Shown: positions 5,671-47,084, counted from the first letter of the stretch. The stretch is DNA of 64,000 bases from Mytilus californianus (GCF_021869535.1 NW_026262690.1:80972001-81036000), one strand, 5' to 3'. Notes: generated by a model not told the origin, from the letters alone. Translations and numbers: made by a program.

Positions 5671-5698
5671 ATGCCACCAAAGGCAAAGGCAGGCTCTG
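5671..5698 (+). CDS. VRK1: VRK1 first coding exon (MPPKAKAGS)
   Basis: Acceptor tttcag at 5667, ATG at 5671, donor G|GTACGT; phase 1 matches next exon. Confidence 0.75.
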
Positions 5699-6052
5699 GT
5701 ACGTGTAATTGGACACTTTAATAAAATCACAAGGATAAATAAAAGTGTAAACATTAAGACATCAAGAGAACCATAGCCCAGATAAATATATAATTGAAAA
5801 TATTAACAAGTTTAAATTGAAAACAACGTTCAAACCTATGATTGCGTTGGATAAAACCGCAATTTTTATACATGTGCATGCAAAACAAATTTCTTGGTAG
5901 AGGGGTCTAAATACAGCACAAACAACATTTTCCAAAAGACCAAAAAAGTGAAAAAGTATATTTTAACAAAACGCATTTGACTAGCAGGTTGAACAACAGA
6001 TGTTCTTAAACCCTGCTGACTGCCAATATTGAAAATATTAATATACTACAAA

Positions 6053-6107
<55 letters not shown>

Positions 6108-9100
6108 AATTGCTATACGGAGTACAAAATTAAATATCTGCCAAAAAGGGACATAACTCTCTCAAATTGAAGACATTTATGTTCCAATTCGATACTATTT
6201 AAAACTAATAGGCAACATTTCAAGTTGGCAACAATTCAGTCATGACTCATCATAAATAAAAGCTTATGAATTTCATTGGCTGCCCTTGTCTCTAACAGTT
6301 GTCGGCAGTTTCAAAACATTTGCACCAAGATCCCCTTTTTTCAGACATGTATACTTTTTGTTATGACTTAATTTGAAATAAGTTCATGCATATTAGATCA
6401 ATGAAAAATGAAGCTATTTGAAAATAAGATTTCTGTGTTGATTTATAATATGATAATCAATTTCAAAAGTGCTCCCTACTTTAATAGCAAACATACCAAA
6501 ACTTTGAATCATGTTTATTGACATTGTTTATACAGCCATTAGCAACTACTGCTGACATATAAATTATGTAAAGAAATGGAAGCAATGATGTTATTGCTTA
6601 TTGTCAGCTGTACACATGAGTAAGCTATTGATTCATTTTGCAAATGTTTCAATTGCTGTATGATATTTTTTTTATACAAGTGAGAAATGTTGCCAGACAA
6701 AAATCTGTCAACAGCTGAAATATGTAATTGCAATTGGCAAAATTGGGGAAGCCCAGTAGTTTTAGAAAAATCCAGTTCATTTTGTAAATTTAAATAGGTA
6801 TATACAAATTTCCTAATATGATATCGAGAACCCAATTTCATAAAGTCAACTATATGCTGCATATAAATTTGAAAGTTTACCCTCAGGCATTCAAATTATA
6901 GCCCTTTTAGTTACTTAAGTGTTTATATTTAGTTTTGACCTAATAACAACAACAAGTGTAACACACATTTGAAAAGAATGATATTTTATGTATGAACATA
7001 AGTTTTATGACATCAGGTACTGTTGAAATGCTGTACAAGTATTATGTCACCGTTTGCTACAATATAGTACATTGAAAGCCGGAGTTTTCTGTCAAGGTCC
7101 ATGTTTAAATAAGTATGTCTTGTGTAGCAATGTTTTTTTTATAGCTCAAAAGAAATCCAGAGCTCCTAAAGCACATAAATTACCAGACCCATTTCCAAAA
7201 GGAGAATTACTAAAGGATTATGGGAAAAAACACTGGCGCCTTGGAGAAGTCATTGGTCAGGGAGGATTTGGACTTATATATTTAGGTAATTAAATGAACT
7301 TTACATTACTGTTTGCTGAATTTTTTTGTTGGGATCATTTTTAGTCCACTATTGTAATGAAACCTCTTTGGCAAAAATAAATTATGATGTCAATTGCTCT
7401 TTCATTAAAGCATAGAAACAAGTTTGGCATGGTTTACTACATAACTGTGTTTTGGCATGATTATAATCCATACTTACCATGCTTACTATGAAAATTGAAG
7501 AATTCCTCTTTGGTAAGCAACCTCACTATAGTTTAAGTTAATGCAATATAATCACTGAAATATTGATATAAAATGGAGTATTTATTATACCCCGCTTCAA
7601 AAAAATTATGCCCCCGCTTTAGAAAAGTGGGGGTATACTGTTTTACCTGTCTGTCTGTCCGTCCGTCCGTCCCATGAATATTTTTAGTCGCATATTTCTC
7701 AGGAACTACATTATAAGGATTTCTGAAATTTGGTTTCAGGGTTTATATGAGTCAGCTATATTGTGTGATGCGTTTTCAGATTCATCACTCAACAACTTCC
7801 TGTTTACCGAACACTTGCATCATTTTACACATGACATCCAAGTTGAAAATTTTCGTCACATTTTTCTCAGGAACTACATTACAAGGATATCTGAAATTTG
7901 GTTTTAGGGTTTATATGAGTCAGCTATACCGTGTGATGCGTTTTCAGATTCATCACTCAACAACTTCCTGTTTACTGAACACTTACATATTTTTACACTA
8001 TTAAAATTATCCAGTTGCGGCGGGGGTATCATCAGTGAGCAGTAGCTCGTAGTTTCACTTGTTTTATCTTTTTTAAATGTTCTTATTAAAATTGTCAGTA
8101 CTTGCTCATCAGGCAATGGTTAATCTAAAATCTGGTGTCTGTCTTTTTACAAACAGATTTGGGAGTAAGTGTGTTTATGCTGTGTAGACTGTCTGTTCTT
8201 GGTATATTCTATAATAATAAAATGTATTTCAACTTTTTTTTTCTTTCAGCAACTCTTGTAGATTCAGAAAAACAGGATTCTTATGTTGTTAAAATTGTAA
8301 GTTTTAATTTAGAAAAAAAATTTTGAAATGTTAAGGTAGAATAGGAAATTCAGAGCGGTCTGACAATATATTGCGGTGTTGTGTCATGTATCTTTTGTAA
8401 CCTTTAACCTAATTAAACCCTTTGAAATGGGATACAATAACATAATTTTGTCTCTGTTTTATTGGGAGATTTAGCTGAGGTCATGATCTACATCAACAGT
8501 CTCATCAGCCAGAATACAGGCTCTACACAAAAATGCTCCTCATATTAAAGTTATTTGAATCTGGAATAATTTTGAATTCTGGAAAATTGATACAAAATGT
8601 CTGATGAAAACTAACCAAACTAAAGAGGATTAGCCATGCACCCATGGCTAAGGTTCATTTTATTTTCACTTATTTCAGTATGAACTAAATACCCCCCCCT
8701 CTTTTTAACATTCCTAAATTGGGTTGGTTTTCATCATACATTTCTTATCAATTTTCCAGAATTCAAAATTATTCTAGATTCAAATAATTTCTTGTTAAAA
8801 GAATTTTGTTTTCTACGATTATTTTTTTCAAACGAATTATACAGTAACTTTTATAACCTCACAAATATAAGGATTGATTGTGAAAGCATAATTTCGCAAA
8901 TTAAAAGAAATGGTATATCACGCCCAGCTTTTAAAGTTATATTGTTTATAGAGCTGACAAGTTTAGGAATTGTCATTCAGACATTTCATTTGCTTGATAG
9001 TCTTATTGCTGAAGATAATGATTTGATTGTTTCTTTTCAATTATTGTCTCTGGTATTTATTTGGACTAATTTAAGAAAATTTTGTTCATTTATATGAATT

Positions 9101-12100
9101 TAATTTTTTGGTTTTGGTTTTTGTTTTGAATATCTGTACAAATTTTTCTTCAGACTTCATGCAAATTGCAATTGTCTGCTCTTTATATGACATGTCTACA
9201 GGTATTGAACTGATTTTTGATATGTTTTGTATAATGAAGAGCAACTGACCAAATATAAATGTTCTTGTTGATCTTCATTTGACAGATTATGGCTTTTCTT
9301 AACTAAAAATGTACATACCAAAAGTTGTTATCCCTTTATTTCTTTCTACATTTTTGTAACTGCATTAAAGGTCTTATATAAGGTAGCTCTCTTGCATGTT
9401 CTAGTGTAGGAGATAGAGAGTTCAAATCTTGGCAGCATCAAACATAAAAAATGCTTGTTTCTTTGCCAAGAAAGCAGCATTTTGGTGTAAGATTCAAAAT
9501 CATATGTTTGAGTAGAGGGACATGTCTGCCTTATACTTTTATCTTGTTAGTTTGCAAATTAAAAATCCAGCTTAGCTTATCAATGCAGTACAAAGGAAAG
9601 TATCTTTATATCACAATAAAGTTGTCATCTTGACATTGCCCAAAAATGCATGTTGTCCTAGCAGCTGGCAATTTAGAAGCCATTTGTTATACTTGATAGA
9701 CTAAACACTGCTTTGTTATAATAGCACTTGAATTAAGAAAATATCATGACAAATGTTGTTGTCAACACTTTTTTTGCTAGCTTGGAGATAATGAGCTTAG
9801 TTAGGGCACTGCTGGTCAAAAAGTTGGTTTAAAGTAGTCACCCTGTGAATATGTTAAAAAATCGTTTCACTCTAACTTTGAAACCCCTTATTTATGAGTT
9901 TTGAAATGAAATTTTACATGATTATTAACTACTAGAAGGTGTGCCATGTACAAGAGGGAAAATGTCCATTGAAAGTCATGTCTTGTGGTCAAAATCAAAG
10001 ATCAACTAGTCACCCCTGTGCATATGGACAAAATTTGTTTCTGTTTTCTTAACTTTGAAACCCCTTTGAGTTTGGTAATGAAAACTATTACAATTATTCA
10101 CCACCACTAAAAGGTTTGTCACATAAGAAAAAAATCATGTAGTGAAAGTCATAGTTAAAAACATACTTTGAGAGTTGTCTCATTGGCAATTATACCACAT
10201 CTTCTTATTTTTGTCGAGCCTTCGACTTTAGTCGAAAAAGCGAGACATAGCGATCCTACATTCCGTCGTCGTCGGCGGCGTCCACAAATATTCACTCTGT
10301 GGTTAAAGTTTTTGAAATTTTAATAACTTTCTTAAACTATCCTGGATTTCTACCAAACTTGGACAGAAGCTTGTTTATGATCATAAGATAGTATCCAGAA
10401 GTAAATTTTGTAAAAATAAAATTCCATTTTTTCCGTATTTTACTTATAAATGGACTTAGTTTTTCTGCCGGGAAATATTACATTCACTCTGTGGTTAAAG
10501 TTTTTAAAATTTTAATAACTTTCTTAAACTATCCTGGGTTTCTACCAAACTTGGATAGAAGCTGGTTTATGACCATAAGATAGTATCCAGAAGTAAATTT
10601 TGTAAAAAAAAAAATCCATTTTTTCCTTATTTTACTTTTAAATGGACTTAGATTTTCTGCCAGGAAACAACACATTCACTCTGTGGTTAAAGTTTTTAAA
10701 ATTTTAATAACTTTCTTATACTATTTTGGATTTGTACCAAACTTGGACAGAAGCTTGTTTATGATCAAAAGCTAGAATCTAGAAGTAAATTTTGTAAAAA
10801 TAAAATTCCATTTTTTCCGTATTTTACTTTTAAATGGACTTAGATTTTCTGCCAGGAAACAACACATTCACTCTGTGGTTAAAGTTTTTAAAATTTTAAT
10901 AACTTTCTTATACTATTTTGGATTTGTACCAAACTTGGACAGAAGCTTGTTTATGATCTAATGCTAGTATCTAGAAGGAAATTTTGTTTTCTTCCAGTTA
11001 ACATTACATTCAGTCTGCAGTTAAAGTTTTTAAACATTTATTAGATTCATAAACTATCCTGGATTTTTACCAAACTTGGACAGAAGCTTCTTACAATCAA
11101 AAGATAGTATCAAGAGGAATATTTTTATTGATTTACTTCCTCATTTTTGTTGAGCCTGCGATTAACAGAAAAAGTAGGCGAGACACTGGGTTCCGCGGAA
11201 CCCTTACGAATTTTTATATTTAACTTAATCATCCCTATGCATATGTATAAATAATAGTAGTTTCTTCTTTCTTACTTAAAAACCCTTGGGGATGAATAAT
11301 TAGTGCTAATAAAAAAACATTTAAAATTGCCATGCATGAGTATGAGTTATGTTTGATTAGAAGAACCCTGATTACTTTTAATTTGCATCACAATCTGCTT
11401 GTTTACTTGAGCAGGGGCCATCCTTCATGGCTCCCATCACCAGCCTCTGAAGTGTACATGTAGTTGTATTTATAATCAGATGTTACAGATTGTTATGAAT
11501 AAAAGGCAATGTGGGGTATACACCAATGAGACATCAACTCAACAACTAACTTAAAGATGTCTATGAATATTGAGCATGCTGCCTTTTTTAAGTATTGCAT
11601 TTTTTTCAGTCTGGGCTTTTGTGTAAAACTGATATCTGCAGATGTAATATTTTGATGAATTGCAATAATAACTCAGATAAATCATTAAAATGGAAATACT
11701 CTTAAATATTGGTCACATATTTAGCCATGATTTAAAGATTATTTGATGTTTCAGGAACCAATAGCTAATGGACCATTGTTCTGTGAACTCCATGTGTATC
11801 AGAGAGTAGCTAAACCAGAAATGGGTGAGTACAGAAGTATATACGATGGTCAAGCAACCTCAAGAAAAGTAAGAAGATAAAATGGAAGGGATTGTGTGGA
11901 TATAGATCATTTGTTTTTTAAAGGACAAACAACATAAAGACCAATAGAAAACATAGTAAAAGAAAGAAAGTATTCCTCTAGATCAAGCCTTGCAAACCCA
12001 ACAAAAAGGTCATCTTGTCACGAGGAGTGCATTATGGTCAAAATGATTTACATAACATTTAAGTTTTTGACTTAAAAGCAGAAATATAAACTAGAGGCTC

Positions 12101-15100
12101 TTAAGAGCCTGTGTCGATCACCTGTATCTACTGTGGTTTTGGAAATCATGTAAAATAAGGTTAAAATCATATAGATTCCCTAATAATGATTGAGGCCAAG
12201 TTTGGTTTAATTTGGCCCAGTAGTTAAATTAAAAGCAGAAGATTTTTGAAAAGATTTACAAAAATTACCAATAAATTGCAGAAAATAACTTTAAGGGGCA
12301 ATAACTCCAATAAGATGTCAATTGCCAATTGGCCATGTTAACTTATTTGTAGATCTTTCTTTGCTTGATATTTTTGCTGTTTACAGTATATCTCAATCTA
12401 TAATGATATTCAAGATAATTAACAAAAAATAAAAAAATTCCTTTCCTTCGCTTCAAAATTTATTTCAACCAGGGCCTGTATAATGCTGAAAATGCCTTTA
12501 AATGTTTTTATGGAACACCCTTCAAAAAAAATATGGGCAAGGGTTCCCCTGACTAACCCGCCGGGTCTGGGGGAGCATTCACCCAATATAAGTATGCTGA
12601 AAGAAAAGATATAATAATGGTTTATAGAAAAAGTAACACTGAATAATTCTGAAAATGGAACATATCAAGGAGAAATTATTAGCAACACCCCCCCTCCCCC
12701 CTGAAAAAATTGCACCCCCCTGGAAAAAAAATCAAGTCATCCCATTGTAGTCTTACAATAGTTACTGAAGACCCCTTATCATTATTTAAATTAGTTTTTA
12801 AGTTGTGACCATTTGAAATTGTTTTTTTACATTTTTCCCATAGACTTCTATAGTAAACCCCTATGTTCTATTTTTACCAATGGGGTCCATCTTGGTTGTA
12901 GGGCATGGTCATCGGACACATTTTTCAATCAAAATACTCTAATAATAATTGTGGCTAAATTTAATTCCATTTTGCCAAGTAGATTAAGAGAAGATTTTTG
13001 TAAAAGATTAAAAAAATTTACGAAAAATTGTGAAAATTGACTTTAAAGGGCAATAACCCCTTAAGGGGACAATTGATAATTTTGGTCATGTTGACCTGAT
13101 GAACATTTCATCTCTGTTAGATTTGCTCTAAATGCTTTAGTTTCAGAGATATAAGCCAAAAACTGCATTTTACCTCTATGTTCAATTTTTAGCCATGGCG
13201 GCCATCTTGGTAGGTTGGCGAGGTCATCGGATACATTTTCAAAACTAGATACCTTAAGGATGACTTAGGCCAGGTATGGTTCAACTTGGCTCAGTCATTT
13301 CAGGAGAAAATGTTTGTAAAAGATTACAAAAATTTACAAAAAATTGTGAAAAATTGACTTTAAAGGGCATTACTCCTTTAGGGGTCAATTGACAATTTTG
13401 GTCATGGTGACTTATTTGTAGATCTTACTTTACTGAACATTTTTGCTGTTTACAGTTTATCTCTATCTATTATAAATGAAATTCACGATAATAACCAAAA
13501 ACTGCAAAATTTCCTTAAAATTACTAATTCAGGGGCAGCAACCCAACAACAGGTTCTCTGAATTGTCTGAAAATTTCAGGGCAGATAGATTTTGACCTGA
13601 TGAACATTTTTATCCCATTGTCGGATTTGCTCTAAATGCTTTAGTTTCAGAGATATAAGCCAAAAACTGCTATTTACCCCTATGTTCAATTTTTAGCCAT
13701 AGCGGCCATCTTGGTCATCGGATACATTGTAAACTAGATACCCTAAGGATGATTTAGGCCAAGTTTGGTTTAATTTGGCCCAGTGGTTTCAGAGGAGAAG
13801 ATTTTTGTAAAAGTTAGCGACGACGGACGCCAAGTGATGAGAAAAGCTCACTTGACCCTTTGGGTCAGGTGAGCTAAAAAGGTGTGAAACAAAACAGCAA
13901 TTCTGCAGAAATCCGATTCAATTCCTAGCTGATAGCTAGTTTTTATCATGACCAAAGCTATCAATTATTAATTATTGTTCAATATTTAAATTTACAATTT
14001 TTAAATTGACTTAATCATCAGAAAATCTTGAGAATTAAAGATTTATCTTTCATACAGTTGTACATGTATTAGAATTTATCTTGTAACAGCTGTACATGCA
14101 TTGAAGTTATTTTATGAGAATAGTACATTACCATAAAGATGTTCCAAATATAAATTGCAACATAAAGTTTGTTTTATTAATATAAGCATTATAAATTGAT
14201 ATTACATTTGATTAGAATGTAACTTACTACCATTTTTGGGAATTCACATGTAAATAAATACAGTAATTCACATGTAAATTATTTCATTTTGAATATATTA
14301 TATCGTAAACAAAATATCATTACAGATGTAACAAAAGCTTATTCATTCAAATATTGATTTTTTAAAACATCCCAACAAAAAAATCCTGTAAAAAAACAAA
14401 TTTGATAAGATTATATTGAACCATACTCTGGAAAAATAAGGATATTGTGTATCAATTCATGACACAAAATCACTATAAGCACACAAAAAACAAAAGCAAA
14501 GGAACAGTGCTTTTATTGCTGGTCTTCATTTTAAAGTCACATTGAGGCCTAAAAGTATCCTAAAGTTGGGATGTTTCCTCCCAATCAAGAGCATAACTTA
14601 CGGACTATACAATTAAGGTTAAGTTGAAATTAACCTTTTACTAATGGTCCCTAAAAATTACCTAATTTCAAATGATTTTACTATAAGAATAACAAATAGA
14701 ACTGTACAGTTGTAAATATCTTATAATATTTCAGTTGATGAATGGTGCAAAGCTAAAAAGATGAAATACTTAGGAGTACCAAAGTATATCAGCAGTGGAA
14801 CACATACACGGGGGAAAGAGACATTTAGGTTTATGGTTATGGAAAGATTTGGTTCAGACATACAAAAAATATTTGAAAAGGCTGGGAAATCATTTTCCAG
14901 GCATACTGTGTGTGCATTGGCTCTTAGATTGGTAAATGAATTTATTTATTTTGTTCTTTAAAGAATTTAATCACAACTAGCTTTTACTTTAAGAAATTTA
15001 ATTCTCGACACATGGTGTAGATATTTGTCTATCAAAGACTATGTTGATTTCTAGAATTCTTGTGTATGTTGGTTTAGTATATTTGTTTGATTTAAAATGT

Positions 15101-18100
15101 AAACCCCCTTTTCTCTTTTCATTTATATTAAGCCGCAAATACATGTATTATAACAAAATTCAGGAAAAGAAGTGAAAGGATGGAAATACCTGGCCAAGGA
15201 AAATAGTAGAATTATGGGGAAATATGCTGTCCTGCTAAAACTAATTATATATAAAGTAATGAGTATCTTTTATTGGCTATTTAATTGCATTAAGAATTAT
15301 ATTTCTATTGTGTCTTGTTTGATTTCAGTTAGACACACTAGAATATTTACATCATAAAGGTTATGCTCATGCTGATATCAAAGCTTCTAATTTACTGACT
15401 GGCTTTAGTCATGGAAAAGAACAACCAAACCAGGTAAATATAGTGTAAGCTAAAATTCTGTCATAAAACAGTTATAGAATTGAATTGAAGGTTTGAACTT
15501 GGTGCATACACTAATTTAAAAACGTAAGAAAAAATAAAATAAAAACCAAAACTTGCTGATGATAAGATTTAAATGTATTGTGTTTTGAATGTTTGCTGAC
15601 AGCAAATACATATTTATTTTACCTTAGAACTTTTCCATCAAAATGAATGGGTAAGATAGGAAGAAAAGTTTTATCATAAAACATTGGTCATGGGTTATTT
15701 ATGGTTCTATGTCCATTTGATGTATGCAAAATGACATAACTTGCTAAACGAATATAAGTAGTGGGGAGATTTTAGAAGTCCCTCACATCTCATTTAATAG
15801 AATTAAAATTATCAAATAGCTGACAAACAAGTGGGTAAATTTGAAATATTTTGCTTGTTAAATCTCAATTACACGAATTCAGGTAAAAATTTAACATTTA
15901 TTATTTAATAAAGCTTTTAGAAATTTTTATTCATAAATTTTTCAACATGTTTATAGAATGAACATAAAGATTTATTCATTTTTAACTTATTTTGACCAGG
16001 TATATCTAGTAGATTTTGGATTAGCATATAAGTTTTACTGTGACGGTGCTCACAAAGAATATAAAGAGGATCCTAAACGATGCCATGATGGCACTGTAGA
16101 ATTTACAAGTACAGATGCTCATAAAGGAGTAGGTCAGTATCATTTATTAGGGTAGCTATAACTACTTTATTATAACGGTAGTTCAGGCAATTGTTCTGCA
16201 ATGGAATATAAGTCTTCACATGTACAGTTACTAAATATTATCTGTCAGCTTAAAAATAAACTGATGAGACAGCAACCCATCTACACAAAAACATTATACA
16301 TTGCTGGGTCAACATATGGTCTTAAAAAAAAACAGGTGTCCATACAAATGTCAAGCTTAAAATTGTCTAAAATATTTTTATTTTTGATAAATAATATGAG
16401 TATGGAATTTTTCGTCAATGTCACATGCAACTTTGATAAATTGTTTGATATTTTTGATACATTTGATATTAATAATTCAATATAGCATCTCCTTTCAAGT
16501 AGACTATTGTTATGACATTTAGCTTGATATTTTATACAATGTTTTCCCAGCATAGCTGATACAACACATATTTATATTAGCTTAGTAGTTTTAGATAAGA
16601 TTTAATGATGAAGGAATGATTTAATGCCAACACTTTATTGTTTATTTCTGTTAGCTGCATCCAGAAGAGGTGATATGGAGATCTTAGGATTCTGTTTGTT
16701 ACAATGGCTGTGTTCACGGCTTCCGTGGGAAAATAATTTAGAAAATAAAGATTATGTAAGAGATTCCAAAATAAGGTATACTTTATTATATTGAGAAGAT
16801 ATAGATTAATGTTTGGATACAGGGGTGATGATTACTTTACAATAATCACTGTTTGTCAGGATATAAGAGTTAAGAATAGAAAGGTTTTAAATTTACACAG
16901 GGTTTCATTTCCATGTTTCACTTTAAATACTGTTGATTATAACATTCAAGCAACAATCTAACTTACTTTTTAAGTCATACAAAATTTGTCCCTTATATGG
17001 CTTGTTTTAAAAATTAAGGTTTATTCATGGTACAAAACATCATAATTGATCTTTTCGTGTCTCAGCAAATTTTACTGTCATGCTATTATGTTTGCATTTA
17101 TATATTTTATACAATCTTTTGACATCGTAATTTAAAATCGTGGAATGATTATCAAGTGCAAATGGTATACTTTGATTCTCAGATCTTTAATCTTAAACTT
17201 CTGTATGACGATGTTTCATACTGATATGGTGTGAATTTATGTATGGTTATATTTATTTTTATTAATGCTATCAGAAGTAATGAAAAATATCTTAAGATGC
17301 TAGCTACTACAGTACATTCCGGTTATTTGCATAGCCTATTTGTCAGACAAAATTATGCAATAAAGCGGAGTATGCTTATATCCGAAATGCCAACTTACGG
17401 AGTCAAATAACATCGATATAACAGATCAGTAAAGGAAATCCCTGAAGAAAGATGAACGTCTATAATCCAATTGCAACATATTGAATGTTGATTTATTCTA
17501 ATAAAAGTTATATGTCTAGTGTCATACATGTTATTTTATTTTGTATTATTTCAATAAAGATTATAAACACATTTTGTTTTAGTTTATTTGCGTACCGACG
17601 TTTCCTTTACAGTTTACCTGGGATACGAAAATAAATTCGTTCTAAAAATAGATTTGTTTCTATGACCCGTATGTACAATGTACATTGTTACGCTTTGATT
17701 AAAATAAACTGTTTAACAAAATTACACAGTTTATAATCATTTTAACAATAGATGTGTACTAAACTGCCTTTGATATACAATATTTACAGCTTGCAGAATG
17801 AAGTAACAATGTTTATTTAACTTCGTTAGTTTCGTATATGCAAAGCAGTAATGGGGCCCTGTACGGGTTATTTGCTGGACACGAGTATTGAAAGTGAGAA
17901 AATATAATAATTAGAAGTAAATACTCTTTTCAAAATAAATCAAAATTAAATGATTCATGTAGAAAATTCTTTAACCATATATAAATGCCCTGTAATATTT
18001 AACATAAATGCAGATCACCCCAAGCCCAATTACGAGAGTTCACATTGGATAATGATCGATAATTAGCAGGAGTTATTGTTTTTGAATTTCACCCCAAATG

Positions 18101-21100
18101 TAATCTATGGACAATGTTTGAAATCCAATCAATTATTTACACCTTTTAAGATAGAATGGTCAGTGTTTTTACAACAATTACCTGTTTGACATTTTTATGA
18201 CCTTGAGGCTTAAAATAGAACATGGGAAACTTTACCTGTGTAGATATCGAGGTTTATTTTTAAATCAAATTCAATCATATAAACACGAAAGAAACTGTTT
18301 TAAAACTTTATTTTAATAACACAAAAGTAAATATGAAATAATAATGAAAATAATGATGCATTCAAGAAAAATATACTCACCAACTTGCCGTTTCCGGTCA
18401 AAAATTTCGACAGATTTAACCAAGCATATCTAGATGGCGATAATTTTCTATGCAATAAACCGAAAGGCCACTTGTAGAGCTATGCATATAACCGGACAAT
18501 TTAACATTAGTTGAATGGGAAATGGTTTTGTGCAGGAGAAAACTATGCAATTAACCGAATTATGCTATTAAGCGGTATGCAATTAAGTGGAGTCGACTGT
18601 ATACTATACAGAAAAAAACTGACTGTACAGATTTACATTATTTTAATTTTTTGTTAGTAACATAAGGTAGGCTTTATTTTGTTACGATTATTTCTAGTTA
18701 ATCCCTAACGTTTTTTTTTTTTCAAATTCCAACAGTATATTGAAGTTGTTCTTATTATATAGATGGGACAGTTGCAATAAAAGTTGCAGAGAAAAATTAA
18801 TTTTCCATTAAAAAAATTATATTATGTTTGAGCTGATATCATTATAGCATACACATTGTTTGTATTTTTGCATCATTTTTTTCAGATATATGAAAGATAT
18901 ACCAGGTTTATTAAAGGCATGTTTTCCTTCTGGTTCCTATCCAGGTAATATAGTAATAATAAAGGCTATTTAAATTAAATTCCTGTCAGAAAGAGGAAAT
19001 TAAATCTGATGTCTTGTGAAGATTGGGTGTCCATGCTCTTTGCACCTTAAAGAATAATTGCAACAACTGACTCAGAGTTCTTTATGTGGCCTATGGCAAT
19101 GCTAAATTTCTGGCCCTATCCAAAATACCCTTATTTTCTAGTGGCAGCCTAAGTTTTTTCCTTTCTTCTCAGTCCACTTACCCTTTAGAACTTACCTATT
19201 GTATTGCTAACATGTTCTATTCCTGAATGTTAAAGAAATATTTGCCACTGGATTTAAGCAACAATCAATCAATTAGAATTTAACAGATTTCAAACAACTT
19301 TGGTAGGCTCCACCAAAAGTTAAGAAAGCCCAAAGTATAAAATGTTTTAGAAATATAAACCAGAAAGGCCTTGACAGAACAGCCAATAAGGTTAACATTG
19401 CCTGAGAGAGTAACACAGTCAATAATTTCATGAACTGGAAATTTACAGACAGATGTTAATATACATCAAGAAATGTCCATATTTCATGAAGAGGATTGAC
19501 CATTCTTTACTTGTTTACTTAACATACACAAAGTTGAAGTTAAATCTAAAAAAATAAATATGTGTATGAAATTAAATATAATAATTTTTTTTTACAGATG
19601 AAATATCTAAATACTTAACATATGTATCAAAACTGAAATATGATGATGTTCCAGACTACAATAAACTCAGAAGTATATTTCGTGGAGGACTTTCTGGGAA
19701 AGATGAATGGAAAATAGATTTACCACTCAGTGTAGCAAGCTCATCAAAGAAGGTTTGTTAATTAACCATTAAGTTTCTAAGCTGGTTCAAGCAAATTTGA
19801 ATTTACATTATCTATTTTTGTCATGACTTTTCATACCCCTGCTCGGAAATAGTTGGTATACTGGTTTCCCTCCTCCTGTTTTTTTGTTTATAACATATTA
19901 TTGTTGCATTTTCTTAGAAGCTTAAAAAGTCATAGCTTCTTCATATATAGTACATTTGTACAAAGCCTTTTCTGGTTTTGCCCATTTCTGATACATTTTC
20001 AGTTTCTTCATCATTCTACTTCCAGTTTGCCATAAACTTAAATCTTTTAAATATCATGCACATTTCCTTGGGGAGGAATGTATTTTTACCATCCCAACAA
20101 GGAGTTAATGCAAGATATTAAAAAGAATATAAACACCAATAAGTATAACAACTTATATACATGTACTTGGAATAAGGTTTAAATAAGAACATTTCTGCTC
20201 AGGGACACTTTGGGCATGAACAATCCACTTTAATGATTTTTTTTCAATAAATTTCTTTTTTATTTCAGCTTATTACCCCACATTTAATATATGGTTTTCA
20301 AATATGAATGCAATATTCAGGTGTTGGCAGTCTAACTTGATTTTGCACCAAAGAATCAAGTGATTTTTTTGTAGTATACCGGTAGATGTTTATATCACAT
20401 TCTATATTTAAACTTATCAACTTTTTGTAATGTTCTTGTGTTGTGTCCCAGAATTTAGAATTTCCTGACATATAAAATTCAAATATTTATCCAGCAATCG
20501 ACCATTTAACACTTAACAGATCTGTGTATAGTTTATGTATATAGGCTCATAGTATCCTGCTTCTATTGTCGAGGAACTGTCACATTCACTTTACAGTTCA
20601 TTTTGGTGTCCTCTTCGTAGTCTGTGGTTAATTAGTAAACAACTCGATTTCTTCACTGATGTCTGGGAATTTTAACAACTTCAATGTTAAATTGCAATAC
20701 TGTAAATTCAGAAATTATTGTGATTTTTGAAAAATAGACATAAATGCGAGATTAATTATTGCGAAATTCAGGAAACGCTGCATACAGATATATGCATCAG
20801 ATATCAGAATGCGAGTTCTTATTAATGGGATACCCTCCCAGTCGCATTATTTGCAATAATAAAAACCTCGCAATAATTTCTGAATTTTCAGTATATAACC
20901 ATTTTTATACAGTGTCAGAAAATATCAAATTTATTTGTAGTGGCTACAAAAAAGTAGTCCTTTTAGTATACTGTTTATCTACAAAGTTCAGTTTGAATTA
21001 GTTATTGTGTGGACATCCATTGCTTGTTTACAATATGTGATAACCTGATTTTTTTAATGAATTATTTGAAGTCACATAAACATTTGCTAAAATGACTAAG

Positions 21101-23210
21101 TTGGTTAAACTTTAGTGGTATGAAAAACTGATGATCAGTCCATATAACATTACTATTTTAACATCAAGCACTATAACATAGGAACATAAAGTCAAGAAAG
21201 TAACAATGGTTTTTTACAAAAAAATCAAGAAGCTAAAATTTATTTGTTTTTCTTATTGAAATGATCTTTTATTGGGTCAACATGATCAAATATAGGATAA
21301 ACGTTGTATAAAAAGGGATTTGTTAATTGCCTTTATCAGTATTTAAAATAATTGTATAGAAATGATAGCAGTGTTAACACAATTTCACTCTACTTTATTT
21401 GAGAACACAAGATGAGATGCAGAGACTCTGTACATATTTGATTTGAAAAGGACTTCATTCAGAAATGAATAATTTTACCGTAAAAAATGAAAATAACGCT
21501 TTATGAATTTTGTTTAAAGGTTGAATGATCCTTTATATCCTTTAATCTATTTCATTTCCAGACAGCACAGAAAAGAAAGAGTGCAGGAGAACCCTGTTCT
21601 CCAGTAGAGAAAAAAGTAAAATCTGCAGCAAGAGTTTCCAAAAAAGAAAAGGAATCTACTCCAAAGCCTAAAGCTGTGAAAAATACTGTGAAAAATATAA
21701 AATCGCCTTCTGCTAGCACACCAAGGCAAATAAAATCACCTGTCAATACTCCCAAACAAATAACATCTCCGAAAGTACCTGGAAAACCTGCTTCTAGACA
21801 TGGAACGCCAAAATTATCACTTGCAGCAAGAAAAAGGTCGAGATCTAGGTCACCAGCAGCAGCTGCAGCATCAAAAGTAAAGAAAGGTGAAAACATTGTC
21901 TACAGTTCAAAACATTCAGAAAGTGATGATAAATCATCTTCAAAAAGTAGTTGTATTATTTCATGATTTAGAAATGTTGTTTTGGCTCTGAAGTAAAAAT
22001 GGTTTCACAGGAAATCTATTACACTCTCATTTGGAAGTACAATATTTCTGGACATCATGAGAAGAATTTAATCATTGTTAGAGAATTACAAACTCATTTA
22101 AATACAATTCATACTCTGCATTCAGTGCTGGAGATAATTAGAGAAATCAATTTAAATCTATAAATCTATTGATATAAAAGAATAAAAGAATCAGGAAATT
22201 TTAATACAGTTTAACTTATTTGTTTCATTCTGCACAAAATTCTTTGATCTATTTATTGTAGCTACAAAAGTTTTATTTTTACTGAGAGGTGCTCAATTAA
22301 GAAAGTACGTGGTAAATTTTTGCAATTTTATTCAAAATGTGAGAACTTATATATACCAAGCAAAAATGTGTTCTGTGTTAATTATTACTGTGAATTTTTC
22401 ATATGGCGTCATGTTGTTTCTATGATGTTAATGTGCAAGACAACGTTTTGGTGAATTTATATGATATTTGAATTCAACTAAAGCCATTAGAATTGTCTTG
22501 TTCATATTGCATTTGCATGCATATATTGTTTTGTATTGTAAGCCAATAGAGAGTAATACTTGATATAACTGTTGCTGGTATCAGTTTGTCTAGTTTCGTT
22601 ACCGATTGCTTTGTAAAGTTAAATTGTGTAAGTCAAATTAATGATATATGAGTATAACCCAAAGCTGAAAATGCAACACCATTCTGTCATTTCCTGTCTT
22701 TTTTTATTTTATTTTTTTTTAAGCTTTTGGTGTTTTTACCTTTAAAATTTGGTCAGGGTTGTTCCATTAAATGTATATGGTACCCAGGGAAAGCACTATA
22801 TGTTAAATTCTGGCTTTGAGTGTAAATGATATATCCCTTGATTTTCAGACTAAAAGAGGCATACAACCTATAAACAATTCAATACACTCAAGTATATTAG
22901 GCAGTTTGATTCTCCTTTTCACTTCACTTTTGTTGTTTTGGATATGATAAAGTTAGGATAGTTGATTTTAGTTTAAATAAAATGATGATGATCCCTTAAC
23001 ACAGATAACACAGATCGTATCTGTGTTTTACTTAGAAAATGAAGTGCTTCAGAAAAAAAAACCTGATATTTGGATGTAATTGACATGCCAATTTTAATTG
23101 TAGGTAGTCCCAAAAAGAGTACTAAAAGACGGGTAAAGAGACGAAAAGCTGTTCCTACATCAGATGCTTCTATTCAGACTTCACCAGGATTCTCCTCAGG
23201 GTCTGGTTGA
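5671..23210 (+). CDS. VRK1: Vaccinia-related kinase 1 (VRK family Ser/Thr kinase); 11 or 12 coding exons, 486-aa or 495-aa isoforms
   Basis: Phase-consistent exons 5671-5698, 7145-7285, 8250-8296, 11755-11824, 14735-14931, 15329-15433, 16000-16132, 16655-16775, 18886-18944, 19598-19752, 21562-21886 (or -21966), 23104-23210; motifs [37 protein letters not shown]. Confidence 0.95.
6055..6103. repeat. (AT)n microsatellite
   Basis: About 24 perfect AT units. Confidence 0.95.
7145..7285 (+). CDS. VRK1: VRK1 exon (Gly-rich loop)
   Basis: [46 protein letters not shown]; AG/GT bounded. Confidence 0.95.
7581..8062 (+). mobile_element. HINE/pearl-like non-autonomous element with two ~168-bp core repeats
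   Basis: Sub-terminal IR ATACCCCGC / GCGGGGGTAT, CTGT/CCGT microsatellite, tandem core, 3' hairpin. Confidence 0.8.
8250..8296 (+). CDS. VRK1: VRK1 exon (catalytic Lys, VVK)
   Basis: [16 protein letters not shown]; ttcag acceptor, GTAAG donor. Confidence 0.9.
8549..8789. mobile_element. Long-TIR MITE, TTAA-flanked on the left (Kolobok-like)
   Basis: ~75-bp inverted repeat AGTTATTTGAATCTGGAATAATTTTGAATTCTGGAAAATTGATA... / ...TATCAATTTTCCAGAATTCAAAATTATTCTAGATTCAAATAA. Confidence 0.65.
9380..9600 (+). mobile_element. Highly degenerate tRNA-derived SINE remnant
   Basis: B-box-like GAGTTCAAATC followed by a decayed version of a common mollusc SINE body (recalled). Confidence 0.35.
10209..11212 (+). 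mobile_element. HINE-like element with ~4.5 copies of a 192-bp core repeat
   Basis: TTCACTCTGTGGTTAAAG recurs at 10291, 10483, 10675, 10867 (variant at 11009); (GTC)n head; 3' hairpin GGGTTCCGCGGAACCC. Confidence 0.8.
11755..11824 (+). CDS. VRK1: VRK1 exon
   Basis: [23 protein letters not shown]; GTGAGT donor. Confidence 0.95.
12088..13880 (-). mobile_element. Large HINE-like element (same family as 26722-27853), antisense in VRK1 intron
   Basis: Head reads AGCTCACCTGACCCAAAGGGTCAAGTGAGCT with (GTC)n on the - strand; ~490-bp internal repeats; tail GAGCCTCTAGTT. Confidence 0.8.
14735..14931 (+). CDS. VRK1: VRK1 exon
   Basis: [17 protein letters not shown]...[16 protein letters not shown]...LALRL. 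Confidence 0.95.
15329..15433 (+). CDS. VRK1: VRK1 exon (catalytic loop)
   Basis: [35 protein letters not shown]. Confidence 0.95.
16000..16132 (+). CDS. VRK1: VRK1 exon (DFG/activation segment)
   Basis: [44 protein letters not shown]. Confidence 0.97.
16655..16775 (+). CDS. VRK1: VRK1 exon
   Basis: [39 protein letters not shown]. Confidence 0.95.
17310..18599. mobile_element. Non-autonomous Tc1/mariner-pogo-type element, TA-flanked
   Basis: TA|CAGT...ACTG|TA termini, degenerate ~27-bp TIR, sub-terminal motif TATGCAAT(A/T)AA(C/G) repeated about 5 times; no transposase ORF. Confidence 0.65.
18886..18944 (+). CDS. VRK1: VRK1 exon
   Basis: [19 protein letters not shown]; phases 2 and 1 consistent with neighbours. 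Confidence 0.9.
18985..19272 (+). mobile_element. Degenerate SINE 3' portion
   Basis: Ends GCCACTGGATTTAAGCAACAATCAATCAAT; a similar tail lies at ~63257-63290. Confidence 0.4.
19598..19752 (+). CDS. VRK1: VRK1 exon (end of kinase domain)
   Basis: [41 protein letters not shown]. Confidence 0.93.
20700..20891. mobile_element. TA-flanked MITE (192 bp)
   Basis: TA|CTGTAAATTCAGAAATTATTG ... CAATAATTTCTGAATTTTCAG|TA; 21-bp TIR with 1 mismatch. Confidence 0.85.
21562..21966 (+). CDS. VRK1: VRK1 basic S/T-P-rich tail exon; internal donor at 21886, or read-through to a CaaX end (CIIS*)
   Basis: Acceptor ttccag at 21561; open to TGA at 21966; G|GTGAAA donor at 21886/21887; AATAAA at 22181. Confidence 0.88.
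   Translation, partial: TAQKRKSAGEPCSPVEKKVKSAARVSKKEKESTPKPKAVKNTVKNIKSPSASTPRQIKSPVNTPKQITSPKVPGKPASRHGTPKLSLAARKRSRSRSPAAAAASKVKKGENIVYSSKHSESDDKSSSKSSCIIS
23104..23210 (+). CDS. VRK1: VRK1 alternative terminal exon ([35 protein letters not shown])
   Basis: Acceptor ttgtag at 23103, phase 1 matches donor 21886; NLS-like basic cluster; SIQT resembles the recalled human VRK1 tail EEAIQT. Confidence 0.75.
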
Positions 23211-23391: not shown

Positions 23392-23795
23392 AATTTATGT
23401 CTCGCCTTTGACGAAAGTCGCGGAAAGCGAGACATAGGGATTGATTTTCCGGCGACGATGCTGGCTTCAACAATTGTTAAGTTTTCGGCTTAAGTTAGTT
23501 TGATAGGAACTACTTGTGATAGATCATTGATATTTGATATAAAGTTGCATTACTATCAGTACATATCAGTTTGACTATTTTGAGGCCCTGCCCCCTAGGT
23601 CATGGTCCAGTGACTGAATTAATTATCAATGTTAAGTTTTCTGCTTAAGTTAGATTGATAGAAACTACTAACAATAGACAAGGATATTTCTATTAAGTTA
23701 CAATACTGTCTACATCTCAGTTTGTCGACCATTTTCAGGCCCTGCCCACTAGATCATGGTCCAGCGACTGAATTGATAAGCAATGTTGCTGCTCA
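23392..23795 (+). mobile_element. HINE-like remnant with two ~155-bp repeats
   Basis: Head GTCTCGCC...GCGAGAC inverted repeat; GGCCCTGCCC...CATGGTCCAG recurs at ~23584 and ~23739. Confidence 0.5.
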
Positions 23796-26079: not shown

Positions 26080-26692
26080 GTTCTGTAGGGTATAATGTTT
26101 TTGACCCGTCCGTCCATCCCTCAGTCCTGTTCTTGTCATCTCAACTCCTCTGAAACCACACAACAGAATTTCATGAAACTTTGTAGATAATAAGGACATA
26201 ATATGGAAATGTGCATATCGACAGGAAATTATGACACAATTTTTGTTCTAGGAGCAATGCCCTTTTGAACTTAGAATTTGGACTAAATAAACTACTGCAA
26301 GAGTTTGTCATCGCAACTCCTCTGAAACCACACAACAGAATTTCATGAAACTTTGTATATAGTAAGGACATATTATGTTGATGTGCATATCGACTGGAAA
26401 TTGTGATTCAATTTTTATTTTAGGAGTTGTGCCCTTTGAACTTGGAATTTTTGCCTAAATATACTACTGCAAGAGTTTGTCATCGCAACTCCTCTGTCAC
26501 CACTCAACAGAATTTTATGAAACTTTGTAGATAATAAGGACATAATATGTAAATGTGCATATCCACAAGAAATTTTTATCAGTTGACTTTTGTAGGAGCT
26601 ATGAGTCTTTGAACTAAGGCATCTGGTGAGATTTTGTTTGCCCAGTGACAATGTGGGGGCATTGGGAATGTGAGCGTGCTCAAAGGTTCTTT
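26080..26692 (+). mobile_element. HINE-like element with three ~172-bp repeats
   Basis: CCGT microsatellite head; AACTCCTCTGAAACCAC at ~26142 and ~26315, variant at ~26486. Confidence 0.7.
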
Positions 26693-26721: not shown

Positions 26722-27853
26722 CTTTTTAGCTCACCGGGGTCCGAAGGGCCCCATGTGAGCTTATGCCATCACTTGCAGTCCATCGTCGTCGTCTGTCGTC
26801 GTAAACTATTTCAAAAATCTTCTCCTCTGAAACTACTGGGCCAAATACCTTCAAACTTTAACTAAATGTTCCTTAGGGTATCTAGTTTATAAATTGTATC
26901 CGAAGTTTTGATCCATTGACAAACATGGCCGCCATGGCTAAAAATAGAACATAGAGGTCAAATGCAGTTTTTGGCTTATATCTCAAAAACTAAAGCTTTT
27001 AGAGCAAATCTGACATGGAGTAAAATTGTTCAATTGGTCAAGATCTATCAGCTCTGAAATTTTCAGACAAATCGAACAACCCATTGTTGGGTTGCTGCTC
27101 CCGAATTGGTAGTTTTCACAAAATTTTGCAGTTTTTATTATTTTGAATATTATTATAGATATATGTAAACTGTAAGCAGCAATAATGTTCAGCAAAGTAA
27201 GATCTACAAAACAGTTAATATGACCATAATTGTCAATTGACCCCTTAAGGAGTAATTGCCCTTTAAAGACAATTTTACACAATTTGTTCATCAAGTTTGC
27301 TAACATTTAAAAATCTTCTCCTCTGAAACTACTTGGCCAATTACCTTCAAACTTTAAATAAATGTTCCTTAGGGTATCTTGTTTATAAATTGTATCCGAA
27401 GTTTGTATCCATCGACAAACATGGCCGCCATGGCTAAAAATAGAACATAAGGGTCAAATGCAGTTTTTGGCTTATATCTCAAAAACTAAGTCTTTTAGAG
27501 CAAATGTGACATGGGGTAAAATTGTTTAATTGGACAAGATCTATCGGCCCTGAAATTTTCAGACAAATCGAACAACCCATTGTTGGGTTGCTGCTCCCGA
27601 ATTGGTAGTTTTAACAAAATTTTGCAGTTTTTTGTTATTATTTTGAATATTATTATAGATATATATAAACTGTAAGCAGCAATAATGTTCTACAAAACAG
27701 TTAATATGACCATAATTGTCAATTGACCCCTTAAGGAGTTGTTGCCCTTTAAAGACAATTTTACACAATTTGTTCATCAACGTTTGCTAACATTTAGAAA
27801 TCTTCTCCACTGAAATACAGGTGAGCGATTCAGGCTCTTGAGAGAGACTTGTT
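26722..27853 (+). mobile_element. HINE-like element with ~490-bp internal repeats; a more decayed relative follows to ~28765
   Basis: Head TTTTAGCTCACC...GTGAGCT plus (GTC)n; tail CAGGTGAGCGATTCAGGCTCTTGAGAGAGACTTGTT; inverted relative to 12088-13880. Confidence 0.8.
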
Positions 27854-37471: not shown

Positions 37472-38141
37472 TTTTTATACGCCCGTCAAAATTTTGACGG
37501 GACGTATTATGGTATTCAAATGTTCGGCGTCCGTCTGTCTGTCCGTCCGTCTGTCTGGCGTCCACATGTCGCACCCTTACTTGAGAATGACTTATCCAAA
37601 TTTCATGAAACTTAAAATAGTTGTTTCTTTTGATGGCCAAACAATCTGTATACTTTTTGGTGCAAATAAGATTAAAACTTTTTGAGTTAAGGGACTTTGT
37701 AACTAAAACGGGGGTGTTTTTTCAAATGTCGCGCTGTATCTCAAAAACGATTTATGATTATTGCTTAAAATTTTACACACTTCTTAGTTATATTAATCTT
37801 AAGATCTGTATACTTTTTGGTGATGATTCAAAATTTTATTTGAGAGTTATTGAGTTTTTTGTTAAAAAGGGGGGGGGGGAGGTTTCACATGTCGCACCGT
37901 ATCTAAAAAACAATTTATGATTATTGCTTAAAACTTTACACACTTCTTAATTATATTAATCTAAAGATCTGTATACTTTTTGGTGATGATTCAAAATTTT
38001 ATTTTAGAGTTATTGATATTTTTATTAAAAAAAGGGGGGGTTTTCACATGTCGCGTCGTATCTCAGAAACGATTTATGAATATTGCATAAAACCTCACAC
38101 ACAAGACGATGGGCGTATCATGCGCTCTAGGCGCAGCTGTT
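37472..38141 (+). mobile_element. HINE/pearl-like element with internal repeats
   Basis: Sub-TIR ATACGCCCGTC / GATGGGCGTAT, head hairpin, CCGT/CTGT microsatellite, 3' hairpin GCGC-TCTAG-GCGC. Confidence 0.85.
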
Positions 38142-44759: not shown

Positions 44760-45322
44760 GAGAGTATTGCATGGCAATAAATAGTTCCCTACCGGTTAAA
44801 AATTAATTGTACTGCAACAAAATGCTAACTTGATCTATAACTTGTCATGGTGTAAACTATATAACAAACATCAAGTCAATATCTTCAAGCATGACGAAAA
44901 AAAAGTGTGGAAAACTGATTAAGTGAATTTTCTAAGTCAAAGGACCATAACTCTGCACAAAATCATCAGACCGAAACAAAATTTGAACTTGGTCTGTAAC
45001 TTGTCATGATAAAACTATATACCAATTATCATATCAATATCTTCAAGCATGACGAAAAAAAGTGTGGAAAACTGATTATTTGAGTGAATTTTCTAAGTCC
45101 AAGGACCATAACTCTGCACAAAATCATCAGACCAGAACAAAATTTGAACTGGATCTGTAACTTGTCATGATTAAACAATATACCAAATATCAAATAAATA
45201 TCTTTAAGCCCGAAGACAAAAAGTGTGGAAAACTGATTTCCCGGACTGACGGATGGACTGACAGACAGACAGACGGAGTGCAAACTCAAGTCTCTTTCGA
45301 CTTCGTCAGTAGGGGACTAAAA
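44760..45322 (-). mobile_element. HINE-like element with ~161-bp repeats
   Basis: Head TAGTCCCCTAC with CTGT microsatellite on the - strand; matching sub-TIR near 44785; AAGGACCATAACTCTGCACAAAATC at ~44940 and ~45101. Confidence 0.75.
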
Positions 45323-46716: not shown

Positions 46717-47084
46717 TCACAGATACATGCCATTTATCAAGTAATCGGCTTCATTGGAATGCAAACTTTTTCCACGTCTGATTCTTCGCTTAACTGTCCG
46801 TAATCGACAGCCAACAAATATAAGTAACATTAGACAAATACCAAGTCCTAATGCCAGGGCCACGATTGGGCCTTGATTATTGTCTGTTGGACTTTTTATT
46901 ACAACTTTTTTAGGTCCTTCCAAGCCCACTTTTTTCTCTGTATCTGTTGGTTCTTTAGGAGTTTCAGACGTAGTTGTAGTAGAATTTTTTGCATATTCAG
47001 GTCTATCAGTCGGTTTCTGTTTTACTGGTTCTTTTTCCTCTGAATCAGCTTTGATCTGTTGATCTTTATCTTCATCCTTATCAT
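46717..47084 (-). CDS. LRP11: LRP11 terminal exon (TM helix and cytoplasmic tail)
   Basis: PIVALALGLGICLMLLIFVGC followed by a basic stop-transfer stretch; ttttatag acceptor. Confidence 0.93.

Follow-up and report, generated by a model that had tools for sequence, protein, structure and literature searches.

Vaccinia-related kinases (VRKs) act through BAF to govern the breakdown and re-formation of the nuclear envelope, and they have a role on chromatin as well. Here we describe the single VRK gene in a 64,000-nucleotide stretch of the Mytilus californianus genome (GCF_021869535.1, NW_026262690.1:80972001-81036000; this whole stretch, which contains no N, is referred to as the window), in which the last coding junction can be read in two ways: spliced, to give a basic tail resembling that of VRK1, or unspliced, to give a predicted C-terminal prenylation signal (CaaX box) of sequence C-I-I-S. 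The closest described system is that of human VRK2, of which the VRK2A form is anchored by a transmembrane segment, resides at the nuclear envelope and endoplasmic reticulum (ER) and phosphorylates BAF, whereas VRK2B lacks the anchor and is nucleoplasmic (PMC5555652). The mussel gene belongs to the same kinase family and would likewise give forms that differ only at the C-terminal end. The anchor in VRK2A is a transmembrane helix, whereas in the mussel VRK it is a predicted prenylated Cys, and the anchored form is the major isoform of VRK2 but looks minor in molluscs. The mollusc gene is also closer in its matches to VRK1 than to VRK2, and the basic tail of its other isoform is of the VRK1 type.

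Three further systems share parts of this arrangement. Lamins combine a nuclear localization signal (NLS) with a farnesylated CaaX box that directs them to the inner nuclear membrane, although they are structural filaments and not enzymes, and the predicted NLS and CaaX tail of the VRK is likened to them in its sequence features only. Among protein kinases, the Ser/Thr kinase LKB1 (STK11) is farnesylated at a C-terminal CaaX Cys, and one of its splice variants has a C-terminus without the farnesylation site (PMC3898322). The LKB1 and VRK families are unrelated, and the weighting of the forms is reversed, as in LKB1 the CaaX form is the main and conserved one and the CaaX-less form is tissue-restricted. 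The yeast kinases Yck1 and Yck2 need a C-terminal lipid-modification motif for membrane localization and function, and with an NLS in its place they substitute for a different kinase (PMC4032983). VRKs belong to the same CK1 group (CK1 follows the VRKs in our PDB search, see below), but the Yck motif is a constitutive C-terminal Cys-Cys acting at the plasma membrane, whereas the VRK signal is a CaaX box on an alternative isoform. As for the spliced ending, the arginine-rich C-terminal tail of human VRK1 engages the nucleosome acidic patch and determines localization on mitotic chromatin (PMC9071384). The canonical last exon of the mollusc gene, with its basic cluster and QTSPG motif, aligns with the vertebrate VRK1 end and is absent from the CaaX isoform; from this likeness the mollusc tail is predicted to bind nucleosomes.

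A lipid-anchor isoform switch on a kinase is a known principle, but its occurrence in a VRK, the read-through of a last intron as its mechanism, and its depth of conservation from chiton to bivalves appear to be undescribed. The author of the original prediction, made from the window sequence, did not know of a prenylated VRK, and full-text searching of roughly 8.4 million papers and preprints likewise recovered none linking VRK kinases with prenylation or a CaaX box. CaaX-type isoforms of two scallops and one brachiopod stand in RefSeq without comment.

Two endings at the last coding junction

The VRK gene has 12 coding exons (5671-23210, plus strand), and its 3' part is organized as follows.

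21562-21886, plus strand: exon 11 (E11), encoding a disordered K/S/P-rich tail with a KRK...KKVK cluster and ending at a phase-1 donor (AAG/GT)
21887-23103, plus strand: last intron, removed in the canonical mRNA and retained (or shortened) in the predicted CaaX isoform; poor acceptor pyrimidine tract
21887-21963, plus strand: read-through coding extension, spliced out as intron from the canonical mRNA but translated in the predicted CaaX isoform; orthologous open reading frames (ORFs) are P0001, P0002, P0276, P0288 and P0353
21952-21963, plus strand: predicted CaaX box C-I-I-S (TGT ATT ATT TCA; Cys codon 21952-21954)
21964-21966, plus strand: TGA stop of the predicted CaaX isoform; blastn similarity to a distant mytilid ends at 21967
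22181-22186, plus strand: AATAAA hexamer, not conserved and of doubtful role
23104-23210, plus strand: E12, the canonical last exon, with its stop at 23208-23210

The acceptor AG of E11 lies at 21560-21561 and the donor (AAG/GTGAAA, with GT at 21887-21888) is in phase 1. The original prediction joined this donor in frame to 23104-23210, and the spliced product is indeed a continuous 495-residue protein. It also described an open read-through of 26 codons ending in CIIS and an AATAAA at 22181, both of which are present: if E11 is left unspliced, the frame stays open for 26 more codons (the split Gly counted), passes through CIIS and stops at TGA 21964-21966, to give 486 residues. The two isoforms share the kinase domain and E11 and differ only in the ending. 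The KRK-x11-KKVK cluster of E11 fits a bipartite NLS pattern, is conserved in an alignment of the tails (A2), and is retained in both.

The spliced tail encoded by E12 consists of a basic cluster followed by (I/V/M)QTSPG. This end is found in bivalves, gastropods, a chiton, the brachiopod Lingula, echinoderms (sea stars), amphioxus and gar, whose VRK1 still shows the basic/QTSPG tail (...TQTSPSIERGRGRGRPKK), and it is the end used by all assembled mytilid transcripts and by all Mytilus RefSeq isoforms. Judged by this distribution, the spliced tail is the ancient canonical end across bilaterians and the CaaX form is the alternative; by analogy with human VRK1, the spliced form is probably chromatin-binding. 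We also note a third C-terminal variant following the same junction in two scallops, Pecten maximus X1 (P0282; …SHDNKATSEKKKSCDSGCQHADL…) and Ylistrum balloti (P0172; …SDSHNNKETCEEEESCNSRCEHADF…), which is neither the canonical nor the CaaX end.

Conservation of the CaaX ending

A search with the E11 read-through ORF recovered genomic ORFs from a mussel of the M. edulis complex, whose tail ends in SSCVIS, and from a distant mytilid at 64% identity, whose tail ends in SSCIIS, and a profile search built on seven tails added a further mytilid lineage ending SSCIIS, giving four mytilid lineages including that of the window. Read-through at the same junction in the M. galloprovincialis genome also reaches the CaaX end. 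Nucleotide identity between the window and Mytilus (L001) is 91.8% in the core exon and 89.6% in the extension and falls to 66% in the next ~90 nt; the corresponding values for the distant mytilid (L002) are 74.9%, 68.8% and 33%, and intron identity between the window and the M. edulis complex is only 66-74%, which places the window in a mytilid related to that complex but distinct from it. The blastn alignment with the distant mytilid spans 21565-21967, from the start of the exon to one base beyond the stop. All mytilid indels between exon start and stop are multiples of three, with none inside the extension. In the distant mytilid the donor is shifted three codons downstream (transcript P0154 is spliced after ...KKNNT), with the read-through frame and CIIS kept. 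Selection seems to act mainly on the frame, the length and the last residues of the extension, which from these comparisons is very probably a genuine conserved coding sequence with a CaaX end.

Beyond the mytilids, read-through of the same phase-1 junction, directly before the conserved last exon, gives the following ends, each followed immediately by a stop codon.

Pecten maximus: GWTCGIS (RefSeq isoform XP_033735097.1)
Mizuhopecten yessoensis: GWTCRIS (RefSeq isoform XP_021341936.1)
Crassostrea virginica: GTSWLWSTCSVS (...STCSVS)
C. gigas-group ORFs: GTSWIQ(Y/N)CSVS
Ostrea edulis: GTTWIQTCSIL
Liolophura sinensis (chiton): GWQRCSVF

The flanking intron cannot be aligned between mytilids, scallops, oysters and the chiton, and the pattern G-W...C-x-(I/V)-x common to chiton, scallops and oysters indicates, at the level of sequence, common descent. 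Cys at -4 is invariant in the seven aligned read-through tails (A2) and in the chiton, and a2 is I, V or L in every lineage. The original prediction turned on whether orthologues keep a Cys at this position, and they do so in all four mytilid lineages, in both scallops, in the chiton and in no fewer than four oysters. Its proposal that both forms are made by this lineage stands with regard to the conserved Cys -4 ending but was too narrow, as the CaaX form is far older than the mytilid lineage.

How often such an ending arises by chance was estimated from 25,821 stop-terminated frames in the window and nine related loci. Cys is present at -4 in 3.7% of these and a classical CaaX in 0.65%. The binomial probability that at least four of seven independent lineages carry a classical CaaX is 6e-8, and it is 6e-5 if only Cys at -4 is required. 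No CaaX end was found in the read-throughs of the preceding donor in ten species (0/10) or in those of the other donors of the window gene (0/10). The CaaX ending of the window taken alone is weak evidence, and it is the comparison across species that lifts CIIS above chance expectation.

In Lingula anatina, isoform X4 (XP_023931170.1) uses the same junction to reach an 8-codon mini-exon ending GNSFCTLV and a stop. The mini-exon (L009:4327-4352, GCA_001039355.2) has a strong acceptor (ttttttcctgcag) and encodes (G)NSFCTLV, and direct read-through of the same donor gives GGYLIAL followed by a stop, so that the mini-exon is a different route to Cys at -4. In Solemya velum the read-through (L012:36953-36991) ends GKVNYKHCALCH before its stop, with a CaaX-like CALC and then a single further codon; it may be a degenerate remnant of the ending. 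Among annotated gastropod isoforms, VRK1 proper has no CaaX end. Neogastropods do have a second VRK-like paralogue (Babylonia areolata LOC143280874, P0136/P0313, and Nucella lapillus KAL8588864.1, P0113); they share 50% identity with each other and 54% with a mytilid VRK over the kinase domain, and both carry an extended acidic repeat stretch (EDEDYHPE...) and end constitutively in a CaaL box (CSIL and CRIL). This paralogue is a predicted geranylgeranylated VRK-family kinase that would have arisen independently of the isoform switch.

Predicted prenylation of the read-through ends

By the classical rule, a CaaX box with X = S is modified by farnesyltransferase (FTase), one with L by geranylgeranyltransferase I, and one with F by either. 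CIIS is a canonical FTase substrate; it is the CaaX of yeast Ras2 and has been scored as prenylated and cleaved (PMC9231725). CGIS, CRIS, CSVS and CSIL are in the experimentally derived prenylation-positive training set of the same study, and CVIS, CSVF and CTLV are listed there as neither positive nor negative (PMC9231725). Five of the eight observed tetrapeptides are therefore experimentally prenylation-positive by these sets. The variation in X suggests that prenylation as such is kept, and not the type of lipid. A second source, the Ydj1-based CXXX enrichment table, was set aside since its reporter disfavours canonical, cleaved CaaX boxes (PMC10320760).

The tail is 38% Ser plus Lys with no hydrophobic core, and the preceding 130 residues are K/S/P/A-rich. 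AlphaFold2 modelling with the tail alignment A2 predicts no secondary structure (pTM 0.11, mean pLDDT 58), and an unstructured segment before the Cys, as modelled, would fit the need of a CaaX substrate for a flexible and accessible tail. Neither ending contains a hydrophobic stretch that could form a C-terminal transmembrane helix, and the mussel CaaX VRK may work like VRK2A but would not be a member of the tail-anchored type.

Probable origin of the CaaX isoform

RefSeq isoforms with a CaaX-type end are present for Pecten maximus, Mizuhopecten yessoensis and Lingula anatina. The CaaX-ended mytilid and oyster proteins that were recovered all begin in the upstream intron or inside the exon, and are therefore genomic or unspliced ORFs. 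The original prediction had the CaaX form arise from an alternative last exon served by the poly(A) signal at 22181. The AATAAA lies at +215 after the stop in the window, the nearest hexamer in M. galloprovincialis is at +619, and the rest of the last intron in Pecten and C. virginica contains no AATAAA or ATTAAA. An intronic poly(A) site was accordingly rejected as a conserved feature, and because the hexamer is not conserved we favour retention of the last intron over intronic polyadenylation. The simplest mechanism would be that the last intron is retained in full and the transcript cleaved at the normal 3' end of the gene. Such an mRNA should escape nonsense-mediated decay because, by the usual rule, there is no exon junction downstream of the CaaX stop. 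The donors of the CaaX lineages all lack a G at +5 (GTGAAA, GTACTT, GTTGGA, GTACAT and GTACAA). An argument from weak donors was dropped, as several constitutive donors of the VRK gene are no better (GTTTGT and GTATAC).

Evidence against an isoform switch and alternative explanations

Several observations weigh against a functional prenylated isoform in mussels. Protein searches with the tail ORF and the seven-tail profile found no spliced CaaX-ended transcript for mytilids or oysters, mytilid and oyster full-length VRK clusters have only canonical ends among the matches listed, and the RefSeq annotation of three Mytilus species has no CaaX isoform. Assembly by de Bruijn graphs is prone to fragment or drop the minor path where splicing forks, and we therefore regard the missing mussel and oyster transcripts as weak evidence. 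The feature is also not universal in bivalves: in Mercenaria, Sinanodonta and Solemya, which represent three other bivalve subclasses, the frame read directly through the donor does not end in a CaaX. A search for hidden CaaX mini-exons gave no convincing one in the last introns of these three; it recovered the known Lingula exon and otherwise a few candidates at chance level. Substitutions in the extension show no third-position excess (8/7/10 by codon position, against 23/15/54 in the core exon), although with 26 codons this test is underpowered and conservation relative to the flanks is the usable signal. Finally, yeast FTase reportedly modifies a large share of CXXX sequences, which makes a CaaX-like tetrapeptide less specific (PMC10320760).

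CIIS might be chance intronic sequence, as AT-rich introns are often open for ~26 codons and 0.65% of random frames end in CaaX, but four groups with unalignable introns have such an ending at this one junction (p ~6e-8) and the similarity stops at the stop codon; the cross-species ends already refute this reading, and we consider it extremely improbable. The start of the intron could instead be conserved as an RNA element controlling splicing or retention, with the frame and the ending as by-products. In mytilids no nucleotides of the exon are better conserved than the last codons and the stop, and TCATGA at the end is common to three of the four orders, as such an element would predict. However, the codons differ between orders (TGT ATT ATT TCA, TGT GGA ATA TCA, TGC TCT GTC TCA, TGT TCC ATT TTA and TGC TCA GTT TTC) while peptide pattern and stop position stay the same, the indels of aligned mytilid exons and of oyster read-through tails alike keep the frame, and the extension varies from 6 to 25 residues with an ending that is always alike, all of which makes an RNA element improbable.

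Two other explanations accept the peptide. The CaaX isoform might be functional in scallops, oysters and chitons and a relic in this mussel, never or negligibly expressed, which would account for the want of a Mytilus RefSeq isoform or assembled transcript, for a mytilid extension four times longer than in other groups, and for its lack of the Trp common to scallops, oysters and chiton. Four mytilid lineages with tail identity down to 64% nevertheless keep the frame, the length and C[IV]IS, while the sequence past the stop is randomized, a pattern that calls for ongoing purifying selection in Mytilidae, and a relic is quite unlikely. Alternatively, the read-through product may be real and its Cys end serve as a C-terminal degron that removes protein translated from unspliced mRNA, or as a palmitoylation or disulfide site, with no prenyl anchor; the extension is variable apart from its last residues, and X varies between S, L, F and V, so that no single prenyltransferase is specified. 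Against this, the fixed features are exactly those of a CaaX box (Cys at -4, I/V at -2, and a stop after X), experiments class five of the eight tetrapeptides as prenylation-positive, and S, L or F at X would be expected if prenylation and not the lipid type were selected. We regard a non-prenyl role as unlikely.

Proposed function

The reading that we favour is a switch between a chromatin-bound and a prenyl-anchored VRK, which taken as a whole we hold to be probable on the sequence evidence. Splicing of the last intron would give the basic/QTSPG chromatin-type end, and its retention the prenyl-anchored end through CIIS. Because an NLS together with a CaaX box is the address of lamins, we propose that the anchored form would be tethered at the inner nuclear membrane or ER, near BAF, LEM-domain proteins and lamins, and would there take the role of the transmembrane-anchored VRK2A of vertebrates. 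For the complete mechanism, in which the CaaX form is made in this species, is prenylated, and is located at the nuclear envelope or ER, we lean towards acceptance with somewhat more reserve. The original idea of one VRK gene with either a lipid-anchored or a spliced tail is upheld by the conserved CaaX at the same junction and by the scallop RefSeq isoforms, but its alternative last exon is less likely than intron retention.

If true, a conserved switch would give a simple answer to the question of how one invertebrate VRK serves both the nuclear envelope and chromatin, would extend the short list of protein kinases that are prenylated, and would hint at the origin of the membrane-anchored function of VRK2A. 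It would also illustrate that retention of a last intron need not be noise and can serve as a coding device of ancient date. A more far-reaching and distinctly speculative scenario is that a two-form VRK, chromatin-binding and prenyl-anchored, was produced from one junction at least in the mollusc ancestor, and possibly in that of lophotrochozoans or bilaterians. Vertebrate VRK1 and VRK2A would then represent subfunctionalization, with a transmembrane helix replacing the prenyl group, and the neogastropod CaaL paralogues a parallel subfunctionalization.

The VRK gene and its surroundings

The ten upstream coding exons of the gene are as follows.

5671-5698, plus strand: E1, with ATG, encoding MPPKAKAGS and a split Gly; the N-terminus agrees with Mytilus VRK1-like X1 (P0270)
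7145-7285, plus strand: E2, containing the GQGGFG glycine loop (tblastn and gene model)
8250-8296, plus strand: E3, using the sole acceptor whose product stays colinear with Mytilus VRK1-like X1 (P0270)
11755-11824, plus strand: E4 (tblastn and gene model)
14735-14931, plus strand: E5, which in a PDB search matches VRK1 (1e-19) and VRK2 (1.6e-9)
15329-15433, plus strand: E6, with the catalytic loop HADIKASN (Pfam Pkinase)
16000-16132, plus strand: E7, with the DFG motif (tblastn and gene model)
16655-16775, plus strand: E8 (tblastn and gene model)
18886-18944, plus strand: E9 (tblastn and gene model)
19598-19752, plus strand: E10 (tblastn and gene model)

The canonical 495-residue product shares 90.7% identity with Mytilus galloprovincialis VRK1-like isoform X1, and the PDB matches of this orthologue are to VRK1 (3.7e-120), VRK2 (2.5e-91), VRK3 (3e-46) and CK1 (3e-33). 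The glycine loop, the HxD...K...N catalytic loop and VDFGLA (DFG) are intact in the assembled product. Single exons give little signal in Pfam, and the family assignment therefore rests on the PDB and orthologue comparisons, by which the gene is a member of the VRK family of CK1-group Ser/Thr kinases. In older GenBank models of M. galloprovincialis and M. edulis (P0153, P0156 and P0271) the E4 peptide is present two to three times, in copies linked by GEY; GEY corresponds to read-through of the E4 donor, and the window has one copy of the E4 peptide (11755-11844). In the M. edulis models from GenBank, moreover, the last exon is translated in a wrong frame. The repeated E4 peptide and the wrong-frame last exon are probably artefacts of assembly or annotation, or reflect a local tandem duplication in those genomes.

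A gene with LRR/TMOD-LMOD Pfam matches lies head-to-head upstream of VRK in mussel (L006:1-5270, which also has an actin match), oyster (L008:1-1301), Solemya (L012:1-932) and chiton (L014:1-400), so that its microsynteny with VRK is conserved across molluscs. The window contains many short tandem arrays with periods of ~155-195 bp (also 105, 136/398 and 496 bp), two of them inside VRK introns, located at 7682-7998, 10290-10987, 23475-23787, 26133-26574, 26808-27815, 37720-38102, 44816-45238, 47381-48997, 52096-54039, 57626-58203 and 63399-63860. Two further reading frames on the minus strand have no Pfam match: a 470-residue open frame rich in N/Q/Y/P/D with HFEDSG-type repeats and a Thr run (59064-60476), and a 127-residue frame with one hydrophobic segment followed by a basic stretch (46717-47100). 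Both may be exons of secreted or matrix-type genes.

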